Shown here: in pieces, positions 32,524 to 64,000 of the stretch
How the letters are laid out: each line of letters opens with the position of its first letter
How positions within the stretch are numbered: the stretch's first letter is position 1
Origin: Trichosphaerium sp. ATCC 40318
Lineage: Eukaryota; Protista; Tubulinea
Assembly (NCBI GenBank): GCA_038496445.1
Contig: JALMLS010000057.1
Location: 113,281 to 177,280 of the forward strand
DNA: 64,000 nt
Direction: 5' to 3'
Program-made: the position numbers and the translations under genes
Notes under the pieces: generated by a model
What the model saw: only the letters and a program-made list of their open reading frames with translations
Told to the model about the DNA's origin: nothing
Databases searched by the model: none

Positions 32524-33630
32524 TTACATTTGTTTTTGTTGTTTCTTTTGCTTTTTTAGCAATTTACGTCTACGACGTTTAAGAAATTTGGCGTGACTGG
32601 TGTGTAGAGTCCAGCTCATACGGGCACTGTCTTTGAATTCTGCCGTATCGAGAGCTTGTGACATGAATGGATGCTTCAGCAACTCCGACGCAGTCGATGG
32701 AATATCAAGGTCTAGGCATCGCTTGACAAAGTCTTTGAATACCAAATCACACTCATAGTCATATTTCGCACAGAATCTATCGAGGGCTGTGTTGGTGTTT
32801 GTTTCACTTCCATTAAAATGGTCTGGATCGTTCCTCATCGAAGGTGAAGGAAAGATTTGACGAGCAGGCATAGCGAGTTGTATAGCCAGCATCCCAATTG
32901 CATAAATGTCGCTTTCTTCGTTGTATCCATCGTTCTTTACATTAGGTGATACAAAGCCGATTGTGCCAACAAAGTCTTTTGAATCTTCCAAGTCGGTTTT
33001 ATATCCGGCGAGTCCAAAGTCAGCCAGTTTAGGGACAAAGTCTGGTGTAACCACAATGTTTTCTGCTTTGATATCGCGGTGAATGATACCAGAATCGTGC
33101 AGTTTGGAGACAGCGGTGAGGGTTGCCTTGATAACAGTTGCTATCTGAGGGCGGGTCACACACTTCAATTCTGCAGCATCGCATATTGCCCTTGGCATGA
33201 CCAAGGCTACATCTTTCCCGTCATCGACATACGCCACCGGTTCGAGAATATTGGTGCATTGTACGGCTCGAGATAGCTCGTATTCGGTTTTCTAAACGAT
33301 TATAAGACAACAAACTCAAAACAACAAAAAAATCGAGATAAAAAAAAACACCCAAAAAACTCATGACAAAAAATACAATGTAAAAAAGGGACGTACCAGG
33401 GTTTCTGCCAGGTAATCGATCTCCTCTTGGCTCTTGTTCGTTTTGTCCAGCACTTTAACTGCGAGTTTAGCGCCAGTTATCTTGTCCTGTGCCTTGAACA
33501 CAGCGCCAAAGCCACCGTTGCCAAGAGGTTTTGTCGAAGTGAGTTTGAAGCTCGTTTTCGGTGTCCTGCCAGTTAATCGGTAGAAAGCGGAAGTTGCACA
33601 GTTCGAGATAGCGTTTACAATTTTAGACAT
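32524..33630 (-). CDS. Ser/Thr protein kinase (STE-like), one intron
   Basis: LGNGGFGAV, LAVK, HRDIKAEN, DFG, GTIGFVSPN and SDIYAIG. Confidence 0.9.
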
Positions 33631-41429: not shown

Positions 41430-43892
41430 ATGGCACTCTCCGGCAGAGACTTGTTAAGTCCTAGATCACCAGAAGCGAAAAAGCTCTCACAGACATCCTA
41501 TCATGCTGTTGTGGCTAAAAAAAAATCTTTTAAACGCAAAAATACAACTTTAACTCAAAGTGGCGCAAGCGAGCCAAAAAACGCGTCATTTTCATCGTTG
41601 TCATTGCAAATGGTGGCTGATTCTGGAAATTTGGAAGTTTCAGCTGCTTTTGAGTACAACTTCGCTTTAGCTCCGGTAAGCTACCTACGGCGAGCTTGTT
41701 TAATCTTTTAAAGGGCGTAAAGCTAATCTCCGAAAGTAAATCGCTACAGCAAGTTGAATGCGTAATTCTTCATGGCACTTGCTTTGGTATTGGGAGGAAA
41801 ACACGAGGATTGAGGTAACAGCTGGTATTGTATGGCGTTTTAGACTGTTAACGGTCTGATTTGTAGTCTGTTCAACGATAGAAAACAGCTTGAAACTGAT
41901 GTACAAAAACATATCTGTGAATATTTTCACGGTTATCAGCCGCTTGGTAGTTGCTTTTTAAAGAGCATAAAACATACTATGGAAGGCGCAAAATTAAAGT
42001 CCTTTGTGCACATGGCCTCTGGTACGAAATACGACCGTTAGCTTCACAAACATAATGTCAATTTTTGCAATTTCAAAAAAAACTCGTCAAAATCTTGGTG
42101 CCTTCGTAACTTAACCTCACTTAGTTTCTGATGATCAAGCAAATATGGTTGCAGACACGTACCAAGGCTTTTGGAATGCGTTGTTAGAGATAAGGCATTG
42201 GAACTTGGCACCTGCCAACAAAAACAATCAAATCATGACTGTTGGTATATTTCCTCCTAAACTATCAGAAGAGTGGTACGTTATTTTTTGTTTCTAGGTG
42301 AGGTCATAGAATTCAACATGTTGTTAGTGTAGAAACAGAGTACTTTACAAGCTGGGATTTGATGGCAAAAAAGATGGCACTGGCTTGGAAGCACTTTAGC
42401 ACTCCACCAGCTGTAATTACAAAAGGTAGTACTATACTATCGGTATTTTTTAAGACGATAATGTAGGCTTTGTGGGTGTGCGATTGAACGAGCTGCAAAA
42501 TCTATATAAACACTCCAAGAAGGATGATACACATATTAAAAAGCACTTTTTAGACCGACTTGCCAAAGGTAAACTTGACGACTGTAAGTTCATGTCAGAG
42601 TGGCAGTTGAATTTATTAATGAAACTGGTCGAACTGGGAGGAACTAGTAGTCAAGAATTTGGTGAGGAAGCAAACTTATGGTCAACAGCAGGTGCTAAAC
42701 GATACAATAAAAAAGTGCTAATAATTCCATTAGCAAAAGTACTTGGTGTGCAGCGTAGCAATCCAAATTTACGTAAATATATAAACAAGAAGCTACTTGA
42801 GAATAGTGTAGTTCTTGGACGGTTCATAGATTTATGTGAGGATGCCGTTGTTAATGTTCACACTGCAGTTGATAAATCACAGCTTGTCATAGACAAGAAA
42901 CCTATAGCTATCGGTGCCAGTGGTGTAGTCCATCGTGGTACCGTGACTGGAATGGAAGTACGTCTTTATTTATTTGACTGTGCTTGTCAGGTATTAATAT
43001 ACTTGTAGGGCGTAGATGTCGCTGTAAAATTTTTGAATGAAAGCAATATATCTTTCGATTGGGGTGACTTTAGACGTGAGATCGCAGCAACGTCACTACT
43101 TCGTCATGAGAATATTGTTGTAACATTAGGTGCTTCAATTGTAGGTGACTCATTATTCATAGTACAAGAACTTGTACACAAGGTGCGCTGCACATTTTGA
43201 TTTCTGGGCTTACGAAGTGGTCAGGGTTCTTTAAGAAATCTCATTCACAAAGACAAATGGGAAATACCTCAAGAGCTTCTGGTGTCAATAATAAGAGATA
43301 TAGCTAGTGGCATTGCTTTCTTACATAGCGTAAACATTGTCCATCGTGACATAAAGACTGACAGTATCCAACTATTGTGTAAATACAATTTTCGATTTAA
43401 ATTAATTATCCTTAACTATGAGACATTCTTATCAATAATAACAACACAGCCAAAATAACAGACTTTGGAACAGCTAGGACTATTTATGACGGCTTTCTCT
43501 ATGAACCTATAGGGACACCTCAGTACATGGTAAAATGATGCTAGCAAGTATTTTCATTGCTCACTCACCACTAGGCGCCAGAGTTATTGACAAGAGCAGG
43601 ATACGATACATCCGCAGACATCTACAGTTTTGGTGTAATCCTTTGGGGTACGAATTGTTTGTAAATAATTATAATCTCCTCACCACTCATAGAACTATGG
43701 GTTAAGAAAGTACCTTGGCATCATGTGAATAGTATTTATATTATAGATCGTCTTGGGAAGGGCGAGAGGCCAATACCTAAACCTAAGAAGTGCCCTGACT
43801 TTTACTCTTCGCTTATCAAGTCGTCGTGGCACCAAAAACCAGCAAAAAGAATGGCTGCTCAAGCTATATTTGAATTATTGCGTGACATGTAA
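41430..43892 (+). CDS. TKL-group protein kinase with a degenerate N-terminal macrodomain-like region
   Basis: Kinase: IAIGASGVVHRG, VDVAVK, FRREI, HRDIKTDNILI, ITDFG, GTPQYMAPE, DIYSFGVILWEL. N-terminus: VQKHICEYFHGYQPLGSCF...YQGFWNALLEIRHWN...MALAWKHF. Confidence 0.9.
43364..43422 (+). other. Probable U12-type (minor spliceosome) GT-AG intron, 59 nt
   Basis: 5' site GTATCCAA, branch-like TCCTTAAC ending 6 nt before the exon, no pyrimidine tract, ends in GAG. Removal restores HRDIKTD-N-ILI. Confidence 0.8.
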
Positions 43893-59908: not shown

Positions 59909-60185
59909 TAATTGTATTTTAATTGTACAATATAAAATGTTTTATTTGTATTTAATTACAACTGACACAATATAAGCCATGTTAACAAATTTGTAAATTC
60001 TATAACCTTAAACAATAAATTGAAATAAGTTAAAATTAGGTAAGTATGAAACCAACATACAATTAAAAAACATTATAAAATTGATTAAGTCCAAATCTGC
60101 TTATTTTATAATTGTATCCTTAAATCAACATAAAGGTACTAATATATTTTTATAATCTAAATTTCTACTGTAACACAAGCCTTTA

Positions 60186-60403
60186 CCCTAATTCTATTTA
60201 GGGTTGTAAACCTAACCCTAGCCCTAGTCAATATTCATTAGGGTTGTAAACCTAACCCTAGCCCTAGTCAATATTCATTAGGGTTGTAAACCTAACCCTA
60301 GCCCTAAAGCAAATTTGCAATTACCAGCCATAACCCTAGCCCTAAAAATGTAAAATAACGATTAGGGTATACCCTAGAAGCCAATTAGAGGTTAGGGTTA
60401 GGG
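60186..60403. repeat. Telomere-motif cluster 1, including a 40-bp tandem unit (about 2.7 copies, 60198-60306)
   Basis: Unit TTAGGGTTGTAAACCTAACCCTAGCCCTAGTCAATATTCA; flanking CCCTAA/CCCTAG and TTAGGG motifs. Confidence 0.9.
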
Positions 60404-60539
60404 ATCTATGCTGTTGCTAAACAGCATGTAGGCAACGTATGTTGCCGATACTTATACATATAGTATTATGTAACAGTGCAAAGCACTGTGTAGAAATATA
60501 TTGCAAAGCGATATATTATAGGGTCACAACGACAACATT

Positions 60540-61205
60540 CTGTAGCGAAGCGGCAAAAAAGCGAAAAACTCATAGAATCCAACAATTTGTAGCGAAGCGG
60601 CACGCATGCGGGACCTAAAGTGGAATGCATTATGTAGCGAAGCAGTAGGCATGCAGAGATTATGGTGGAATGCATTCTGAAGCGAAGCGCCATATTACAA
60701 AACCTAATGCGAAAAAAAAATTAAAAGAATCTAAGATACTGTAGCGAAGCGGTGCGCATGTGACACCTAATATCGGATGCATTATTCAGCGAAGCGGCAT
60801 ATATGCGGTGCCTAAAGTGGAATGCATTCTGAAGCGAAGCGCTTCATGCGAAAAAAATGAAGAAATCCAAGATATTGTAGTGAAACAACAATATGATACC
60901 TAAAGTGGAATGCATTATTTAACGAAGCGGTACATGCATAAACCTCAAAGTGGAATGCATTTTGAAGCGAAGTGCTTTATGCAAAAAAATGAGAAAATCC
61001 AAAATATTGTATGAAACAAAAATTGTAACATTTAAAAGTGAAATGCATTATTTAGCGAAGCGGTACATATACAAACCTCACAGTGGAATGCATTCTGAAG
61101 CGAAGCGCTTCATGTTGAAAAATGAGGAAATCCAAAATATTATAATGAAACAAAACAAATTGCAACTATTAAAGTGGAATGCATTATTCAGCGAAGCGGT
61201 ATGAT
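60540..61205. repeat. Degenerate satellite: about 45-bp monomers (AGCGAAGCG / GTGGAATGCATT) in a 133-151-bp higher-order unit
   Basis: AGCGAAGCG-like motifs recur about every 45 bp; an AATCCAA(G/A)ATATTGTA-like marker recurs near 60576, 60727, 60862, 60996 and 61128. Confidence 0.85.
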
Positions 61206-61462
61206 AGTGGATAAGATTATGTAGCAAAGCTACATATTGAAATATGTAATATAATAATACCAATAATAGTGTAACCATAAAAAATACAATAATATAATAT
61301 AAATGGTTGTGTAATATTAAAGTAAAAAAGTACAAATATATTAAAAAGTATAAATGTAAGTAAAATAATGTCAAGTATAACGTTACAATAACATAGAGTA
61401 TAAATATAAAACCTTAAAGGAGTTTTATGTGTGTAAAAGTCAAATCAAAACAGAATTTCGTG

Positions 61463-61585
61463 TAACCCAACCCTAACCCTAATCACAATTAGGGCAAAGC
61501 CCTAATGTAAACTAACCCAAACCCTAAAATCGATGTTCAATTGCTAGGGTTAGGGCTAGGGAAAAACGTAGGGTTAGGGTTTAGG
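61463..61585. repeat. Telomere-motif cluster 2 (CCCTAA-rich, then TTAGGG-rich)
   Basis: CCCAACCCTAACCCTAA ... CTAGGGTTAGGGCTAGGG ... TAGGGTTAGGGTTTAGG. Confidence 0.85.
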
Positions 61586-61806
61586 AGTCTGCTACTATTT
61601 TTTTTTTCAAACCTTACATTTGCTTGTTAGTAACGTTTCGAGCTAATTTTGCCACATGCTATTGCATGTAGGAATTTTCGTATGTTACAAGGGTCATAAA
61701 GATTAGTTCTTGTCATAATTTTGCATTTTTCTCATTATTTTCTTACTATTGTCCACATACACAATTGTCATCAACAATGTCAATTGCATGTTTGAAATTG
61801 TGCATG

Positions 61807-61949
61807 AAACTAAAGTGTTTGTTTGAATTACAAAGACTTTAAGCAGATTCAGTGAAATAGCCTTGATAAAACTAAAGTGTATGTTTGAATTATAAAAACT
61901 TTGAAGAGATTCAATGAAATTGACATAATAAAACTAAAGTGCATGTTTA
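61807..61949. repeat. 62-bp tandem repeat, about 2.3 copies
   Basis: AAACTAAAGTG starts at 61807, 61869 and 61931. Confidence 0.85.
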
Positions 61950-62225
61950 TTTATTATTTGATAAATAACAATGTATGTACACTTTTTTTTTTTTTTATAA
62001 TTATTAATCAATTTCAAAGAACGTAGGTGTTCTCTGGTATTGACATACATATGCATGTGTGATTCAATCGCCGTCACGTGATATTGTCTTAGTTTGACTT
62101 TATCAAAACACAGGATGAGCAACAACACAGAAGACTCTCCTACATCTAAGGGCTCTGAAAAGCCTATAAATGCTAGGAGAATACCCAAGCAGAAAAAAGG
62201 TACCAACTTCCTCCTTTTTTTTTTT

Positions 62226-62276
62226 AACCCCTTCCATTAGGCTTTATTAATTAAATAAAGCCTAATGAAAGGGGTT
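62226..62276. repeat. 23-bp inverted repeat (hairpin) flanked by T runs
   Basis: AACCCCTTCCATTAGGCTTTATT / AATAAAGCCTAATGAAAGGGGTT, one mismatch, 5-nt loop. Confidence 0.9.
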
Positions 62277-62701
62277 TTTTTGATTTTAAAGGGTTTTTTT
62301 AAATCCCTAATTTTTCTTTGAAAGTTTTTCGTTGAACCTCGTCGCACATGTATACGCATGTCACGATAGGTCGCCATAGCAAAGCATTTGAGGACATATT
62401 CTATGTGTATCAATGCTAGCTATTGCTTTATCGTGTACAGGCATATATGTGTTTTTGATGGGTTTATTTTTGCTTTAATAATACAACAAGTCAATGTATG
62501 CAGTGGTAAAATGAAAACGGGATTTTGGATATAAATCCCACTAAATTCCTTTGTTTTAGGGATTTTTAAGGTAATTTGTGAAGAATTCTTATTTTTATTT
62601 TTTTTTATGGCAGGATTTTTGATAGAATTACCATAATATTCCCTTAAATATGGAATTTTCAGAATTATTGTACAAAATCCACCAAATAATGTACTAATTT
62701 A

Positions 62702-62770
62702 GTTAGGGTTAGGGTTAGGGCTAGGGTTGAGGTTTATGAAAGTACAAATTAAGTTAGGGTTAGGGTTTAG
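62702..62770 (+). repeat. Telomere-motif cluster 3 (TTAGGG-rich)
   Basis: GTTAGGGTTAGGGTTAGGGCTAGGGTTGAGG...GTTAGGGTTAGGGTTTAG; another GGTTAGGGTTAGGG at 63961-63974. Confidence 0.85.
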
Positions 62771-63540
62771 TTTTATATTTGCAAAAAACCATCGACACCT
62801 TAGGTACATAGGTTTTTCTAGCGAACAATATCCACATGCTATTATTAAAGGTGAAAAAACCAATGGTACAGGTTAAAGTGCGTTAATCCAAAAAGTAACG
62901 GAGAACGCGTTTTAGGTGGTTTGGAAAATCACTTAAACATAAATATCTCTTACTTATCTGTTTTAGGATGATTAAAGCATTGCAACAGCCTTATTACATC
63001 ATTAAAGAATGTATTTAAAGCATTAACTCCAAGTACATTGTTTTTAAAGCTTATTTCCACTTAATTTATCAAAAAACCCTACGCGTTCTTAATTTAGCGT
63101 TTACAAATGCATTAATTATTGTTCAGGCTCTCAAAACCAAATGCGATCAAATTACTTCTTTCGTTTATGAAGACACGATGTATTTAACTTGTACGTATTA
63201 TTTAGGATGTTTGTATTTTGTAATGATCAATAAATAAAATGACTTTGCATTAAATCTGAACCAAAGTATCGAATAATATTTTGTGTAATTTATAAAGTAT
63301 TTTTTATTGAAATCTACAAAAAATACATTAAGAAATGCTATAAAGAATACATAGAGAATTCTATATAAAATACATACGCAATTCCAAAAGTAATACTCTA
63401 AGAATTCTATGAGTAATACTTACGGAATTTCATATAAATTCAATGGGAATTAAGGAAGAGTTTTTCCGTCTACTTTTCCCATAGGAAAACAGGGTGGATT
63501 ACTTAAAAATTCCCATTTCTATTTTACTACTGTGTACGCA

Positions 63541-63819
63541 TACGTTCCGAGGTCGGAACTCATGTTTACATACATTGACTTTTTTGGATTACGTTCCGAG
63601 CTCGAAACGTACGTTTACATACGTTGACTTGTTTGGATATGTTCCGAGCTCGGAACGTATGTTTACATATGTTGACCTGTTCGGTTTACATTCCTAGCTC
63701 GGAATGTACGTTTACATACGTTGACTTGTTTGGATATGTTCCGAGCGCGGAACGTACGTTTACATATGTTGACTTGTTTGGATATGTTTCGAACTCGGAA
63801 CGTACGTTTACATACATTG
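63541..63819. repeat. Tandem array of six 48-49-bp units, each with a palindromic core GTTCCGAGCTCGGAAC
   Basis: Cores start at 63544, 63593, 63641, 63690, 63738 and 63786. Confidence 0.92.
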
Positions 63820-64000
63820 TTTTTATATTTAGTTGATATTTCTATTTTAACTTGTTTATTGTTGACTATGACTAACTTTTACACTAGTTCCAGAGCCCAA
63901 AGGTATTGGCTGGTTTATATTGGCAAATATAAATTCACACTTGAATTGGAAGAAAGCTATGGTTAGGGTTAGGGATTTAATTTGAACCATGCATTACCAC

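Follow-up and report, generated by a model that had tools for sequence, protein, structure and literature searches.

A U12-type intron in the catalytic loop of a Trichosphaerium TKL-like kinase, at the position of the animal Raf U12 intron

The window studied here is a stretch of 64,000 nt from the genome of the marine amoeba Trichosphaerium sp. ATCC 40318. On the forward strand it harbors the gene of a TKL-like protein kinase (41979-43892), in which 11 or more exons were recognized. Its kinase domain is encoded from about position 42900 and the stop codon resides at 43890-43892. Exons were identified by exact matches to P0001, a peptide of 456 amino acids from the public MMETSP0405 transcriptome (taxid 498012, Trichosphaerium sp. 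ATCC 40318); they were searched singly, and full-length analyses were performed on P0001 without a joined exon model. Matches without any deviation were obtained for the exon 43009-43182 (aa 248-305), the translations of 43225-43362 (aa 306-351) and 43425-43529 (aa 353-387), the exon 43575-43646 (aa 388-411) and the sequence from 43695 onwards (aa 413-456). P0001 also revealed five further upstream exons and a GT-AG intron of 42 nt at 42692-42733 (+). This short intron is in frame, contains no stop codons and is absent from P0001; its retention would add 14 residues to the protein.

A kinase domain (aa 228-454) is the sole Pfam domain of P0001 and scored 165.9 bits with PF07714 and 165.2 bits with PF00069. 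The best relatives of the exons among solved structures were mixed, comprising MAP3K12 (DLK), CTR1, KSR, LIMK1 and B-Raf, and the domain is closest to members of the TKL group. The Raf N-terminal domains RBD and C1 were not found by Pfam in P0001, and judged by domain architecture, the gene encodes a generic TKL-like kinase and not a Raf orthologue. A close paralogue was not found in the Trichosphaerium genome. The N-terminal part (41979-42900, +; aa 1-227) exhibits no Pfam domain, and among 1.84 billion representative proteins residues 100-247 of P0001 had no relative but the gene's own transcript peptide. Word searches with exon-sized pieces of this N-terminus, of a CDK11-like and of a PAK-like gene, the length window of which leaves out full-length proteins, disclosed no relatives either.

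The intron of interest is located at 43364-43422 (+). It comprises 59 nt, has GT-AG borders and interrupts the catalytic loop of the kinase in phase 1. The upstream exon (43225-43363), which encodes GSLRNL...VHRDIKTD, ends with ...CAT CGT GAC ATA AAG ACT GAC A, the last nucleotide being the first base of an asparagine codon. The intron opens with GTATCCAACT at 43364, and the downstream exon (43423-43529), encoding (N)ILINNNNTAKITDFG...GTPQYM, continues with AC ATT CTT ATC. Thus, the Asn codon (A/AC; here and below the slash denotes the splice site) directly following HRDIKTD is split, as the earlier note had read it from the DNA. Within the intron, the donor GTATCCAA (43364-43371) contains the core GTATCC, which fits the U12 consensus, followed by AA at +7/+8. 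The exact 8-mer TCCTTAAC, a branch-site motif, was detected at 43409-43416 and offers two candidate branch adenosines, at 43414 (-9) and 43415 (-8) counted from the intron 3' end. The acceptor AG (43421-43422) follows the motif at a distance of 6 nt. Since only TATG lies between TCCTTAAC and AG, the intron, which ends with TATGAG at 43422, is devoid of a pyrimidine tract.

The borders of this intron were corroborated by the transcript peptide. P0001 reads KTD-N-ILI across the junction, with the split codon represented by Asn352, and matches both flanking exons residue for residue, so that the junction 43363/43423 is used in the mRNA. An exon-by-exon Pfam scan gave the same picture: the upstream exon ends at position 130 of PF07714 and 126 of PF00069 with its second-to-last residue, and the downstream exon begins at positions 133 and 129, respectively, leaving only Asp and the split Asn in the gap. 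The profile coordinates are therefore continuous across the intron. We found no evidence favoring an artefact of the gene model, be it the absence of an intron or an intron with other borders; the exact exon matches of the peptide spanning the junction refute this reading, the continuous profile speaks against it as well, and we regard it as practically eliminated.

We then asked to which class the intron belongs. The combination of GTATCC and TCCTTAAC at a spacing of 20 to 50 nt occurs once in the 64,000-nt window and did not appear in 100 shuffles. Genome-wide counts were made on the 70.3-Mb Trichosphaerium assembly, with the reversed pattern as control (the genome of Trichosphaerium sp. has been reported to comprise 70.87 Mb with a mean intron length of 75 nt; PMC10521059). 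At a spacing of 25 to 55 nt, GTATCC was followed by TCCTTAAC in 53 cases compared to 3 in the control, but for GTAMGT, the common donor, the corresponding numbers were 43 and 37. The branch motif hence goes with GTATCC donors, whereas GTAMGT shows no such association. A strict set of 36 non-redundant U12 introns of this genome was used to judge the remaining features. In these introns, which are 53 to 79 nt long, the first AG is situated 5 to 13 nt past the motif, most often 6 to 8 nt and in six of the 36 at exactly 6 nt. Only GTATCC is well kept in their donors: T was found at +7 in 22 and at +8 in 17 of the 36, and 14 have A at +8. The earlier note had pointed to the length of 59 nt, the AA at +7/+8 and the very short distance between branch site and AG as peculiar. 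All three features are present, but they are ordinary for U12 introns of the Trichosphaerium genome.

The genome was also inspected for the machinery needed to remove such introns. Sequences scoring above the Rfam gathering score were obtained for U11 (66 bits) and U6atac (52 bits). A U12 candidate reached 39 bits, which is below the gathering score, yet its branch-pairing box UGAGUAAGGAAAAUAA is intact. Two proteins exceeded the Pfam cut-offs, namely PDCD7, the U11/U12 59K protein (42.5 bits), and CCDC84/CENATAC (60.9 bits). U4atac gave no match in the genome, neither with the Rfam model nor with a hand-made pattern composed of the U6atac pairing region and the Sm site. Components of a minor spliceosome are thus encoded in the Trichosphaerium genome, in line with the proposal that this organism has kept it, though of the RNAs that the earlier note wanted to see, U4atac was not recovered and U12 is represented by the sub-gathering candidate. 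The U6atac candidate (307774-307894 on the forward strand of contig C20 of assembly G000; L002:1501-1621) reads GAGCCGAGAGAUGG where the Rfam consensus has GAAAGGAGAGAAGG. GCCGA thus replaces AAGGA in the box whose usual partners are donor positions +4 to +8, a deviation in keeping with the poor conservation of +7/+8 among the Trichosphaerium U12 donors.

Taken as a whole, these data indicate that the intron 43364-43422 is very probably real and of the U12 class, as had been proposed on the basis of its GTATCC donor, its branch motif and the missing pyrimidine tract. We also considered an ordinary U2-type intron with a fortuitous likeness to U12, or a former U12 intron that has been converted to U2. 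The AA at +7/+8 in place of TT, the sequence TTAAC, which could also act as a U2 branch site, and the failure to detect U4atac by either approach in the genome would be compatible with this. Nevertheless, GTATCC is followed by TCCTTAAC about 18 times more often than in the control, an enrichment that the common donor GTAMGT lacks altogether, the distance of 6 nt between motif and AG is that of other strict U12 introns, a pyrimidine tract is absent, and U11, U12, U6atac, PDCD7 and CENATAC are present; a U2-type intron or relic is accordingly very improbable. For the U12-type intron we infer removal by the minor spliceosome. The GTATCC donor would be recognized by U11 and its proteins; it speaks against this reading that, because of the AA at +7/+8, the donor pairs with U11 at only about three positions. 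The conserved GUAAGGAA box of U12 would pair with TCCTTAAC, bulging the A at -8 or -9, and the nearby AG may be picked by its distance and not by means of a pyrimidine tract.

Other Amoebozoa (Physarum, Protostelium, Pelomyxa and Acanthamoeba) have likewise kept the minor spliceosome and possess, like Trichosphaerium, short introns with strong branch motifs (PMC10639083); Trichosphaerium is not among the U12-bearing Amoebozoa named in the accessible part of that work.

The position of the intron was compared with that of the U12 intron which, according to the earlier note, resides at the equivalent Asn of animal Raf genes. In a metagenome scan, HRDxKxx-A/GTATCCTT was encountered at 28 loci, about 22 of which are animal Raf genes; the remainder is either noise or a Ser codon in coding sequence (PAK4-type HRDIKSDSILL). 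The Raf loci read ...YLHAK[SN]IIHRD[LM]KSN, followed by the intron and (N)IFL...DFGLATVK..., and resume with AY. Their introns at the Asn codon comprise 113 to 1494 nt, and a branch site of the TTCCTTRAY type lies close to the 3' end. Among the animal genes in the scan, Raf alone had a U12-type intron at this codon. Four contigs with vertebrate-type RAF1 or BRAF peptides (L071, L084, L092 and L094) were left out after the first pattern parse, as L084 and L092 match a general vertebrate BRAF peptide. The four were not taken as human, since those of the RAF1 type read GSI at a site where human RAF1 presumably reads GSV. A search of viral contigs yielded two chance matches only. The mouse primer 'Braf_U12_intron' encodes HAKSIIHR, which belongs to the exon just upstream of the intron (PMC12332006).

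The Raf intron named in the earlier note was thereby confirmed and proved to occupy the same place as that of the host gene. In animal BRAF/RAF1/ARAF (HRDLKSN/(N)IFLHEDL) as in the host, a GT-AG intron of the U12 class splits the same catalytic-loop Asn codon in phase 1, and the Pfam coordinates agree: the downstream Raf exon starts at position 133 of PF07714 and covers positions 129-164 of PF00069, which are exactly those of the exon 43423-43529. Moreover, the next intron of the host gene, a U2-type intron of 45 nt (43530-43574, +) inserted in phase 0 between M and APE, is found at the same position in animal Raf. The introns differ in that the one of the host is only 59 nt long compared to 113-1494 nt in the Raf loci, has the donor GTATCCAA instead of GTATCCTT and a branch site nearer to the AG. 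Unlike the animal Raf proteins, the host protein also lacks RBD and C1, and its N-terminus is an orphan. Another intron of the two genes lies in near-coincidence. In the Raf loci L073 and L080, the Gly codon preceding DVAVK is interrupted in phase 1 by a G-loop intron, which is absent from some Raf loci, and in the host gene a phase-0 intron (42958-43008) is located one base earlier (GME/GVDVAVK). It was not counted as shared with Raf.

The common M/APE intron strengthens the view that the intron at the Asn codon was inherited from an old ancestor, and we think it likely that the host intron and the Raf intron descend from the same ancestral intron. The overall reading of the locus, in which we place high confidence, is that of a genuine minor-spliceosome intron (U12-type, GT-AG) in a TKL-like kinase gene, removed exactly at 43363/43423 and situated at the same place as the Raf U12 intron; its inheritance most likely dates back to an ancestor that preceded the separation of amoebae and animals. 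The intron itself is ordinary and adds one more well-documented, RNA-supported U12 position that is conserved between Amoebozoa and animals.

We also examined the same codon in other kinase genes of Trichosphaerium. HRDxKxx-A/GTATCC gave 18 matches in the genome and none in the control. When any donor starting with GT was allowed, 26 matches, again with no control hit, were obtained, of which 17 had GTATCC, two GTATCT and seven other donors. Thus, 19 of the 26 introns at the Asn codon of HRDxK kinases possess a U12-like donor, even though U12 introns constitute a small minority genome-wide. The uninterrupted motif HRDxKxxN was encountered 147 times (control, 1). A wider pattern, D-x-K-x-x-A/GTATCY, resulted in 31 matches compared to six in the control and added valid cases, namely kinases reading YRDLKPE, FRDVKPE and HCDIKSP. 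After removal of likely allelic copies, about 21 kinase genes with a U12-like intron at the Asn codon were counted. The introns are 59 to 176 nt long and show U12-like branch sites; a common sequence was not found in their cores. The genes fall into the groups TKL, CDK (CMGC), STE, CAMK, AGC and NAK. Their best solved relatives include CDK11, PAK/MAP4K, MAP3K2, STK16, CaMK1 and PDK1/AKT-like kinases; the MAP2K, PKA-like and S6K-like members were assigned by motif alone, a 31-aa piece of the MAP2K-like gene having found no match in the search of solved structures. The Asn-codon U12-like site is therefore not specific for TKL kinases in Trichosphaerium. Hence, of the claim that the host gene keeps an ancient TKL intron, the old inheritance was strengthened by the M/APE intron but the restriction to TKL did not hold.

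Some further observations were made on these genes. All six AATATCC matches in HRDxK kinases turned out to be plain coding Asn-Ile-Leu, and an AT-AC subtype at the Asn codon was rejected. In two loci, L065 (contig C231, after HRDIKPD) and L116 (contig C180, after HRDIKPE), the U12-like introns of 71 and 76 nt, respectively, apparently end with AT and not with AG, as judged from the reading frame only. The STE-like kinases L053, L059 and L060 have a second intron in common, which closely precedes the DFG motif (following ...VKL/IKI G, where the slash separates two residue variants).

The many non-TKL kinases with a U12-like intron at this site allow the Raf match to be explained by a site-specific tendency of intron gain as well. 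The Asn codon would then be a hot spot at which U12-type introns repeatedly arise or settle, and the introns of the amoeba and of Raf would not go back to one and the same ancestral intron. Apart from the occurrence in about 21 genes of at least six groups within one genome, such a convergence is favored by the facts that Raf was the only animal gene with the site in the metagenome scan and that the host gene is, by its domain architecture, not a Raf orthologue. Against it, no mechanism is known by which a particular codon would acquire U12 introns, the cores of the introns show no sequence relationship and thus nothing that points to a recent spread by mobility, the second, ordinary intron position (M/APE) is common to Raf and the host as well, and U12 intron positions are conserved across kingdoms (PMC2426677). 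We consider convergence rather unlikely and retain common descent of the amoeba and Raf introns as the preferred reading.

The kinase groups to which the approximately 21 genes belong split from one another prior to LECA, the last common ancestor of eukaryotes. Common descent may reach further back: tentatively, and with somewhat less than even confidence, we suggest that a single U12-type intron in phase 1 of the catalytic-loop Asn codon already existed, before LECA and before the kinase groups diverged, in the gene from which the eukaryotic protein kinases descend, and that it was kept as U12-type in about 21 Trichosphaerium kinases (TKL, CMGC, STE, CAMK, AGC and NAK) but in animals only in Raf. 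Pairs of U12 introns in pre-LECA paralogues have been described by Vosseberg et al. 2022 (PMC9120149, Supplementary Note 3), who, as here, encountered one U12 position in deeply diverged paralogues. Such pairs were few, whereas here a single genome shows one site in about 21 kinase genes; a term search of the accessible part of that work found no protein-kinase example among the pairs. Our literature search did not find any paper on a kinase-wide U12 position. The kinase-wide pattern is the new element and deserves attention above the single intron. If the site is ancestral, a U12 intron would be dated before the kinase radiation, with implications for the time and mode of origin of the two intron classes. 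If the pre-LECA reading is true, no larger set of paralogues with a common U12 position would be known, and the age of U12 introns could be gauged directly against early gene duplications. If the codon is a hot spot of gain instead, it would point to an unknown mode of U12 intron origin.

Finally, some features of the window outside the host gene were recorded. Another kinase gene, on the reverse strand, contains the uninterrupted motif HRDIKAEN (33056-33081). An identical 26-mer lies about 59 kb off on the same contig (C128:87588-87613 of assembly G000), so that this gene may be duplicated. Towards the end of the window (60001-64000) the GC content falls to 32%, and at 63640-63785 (-) copies of the unit cggaacATATCCAAACAA lie about 48 and 97 nt apart, in the manner of a short tandem repeat array.
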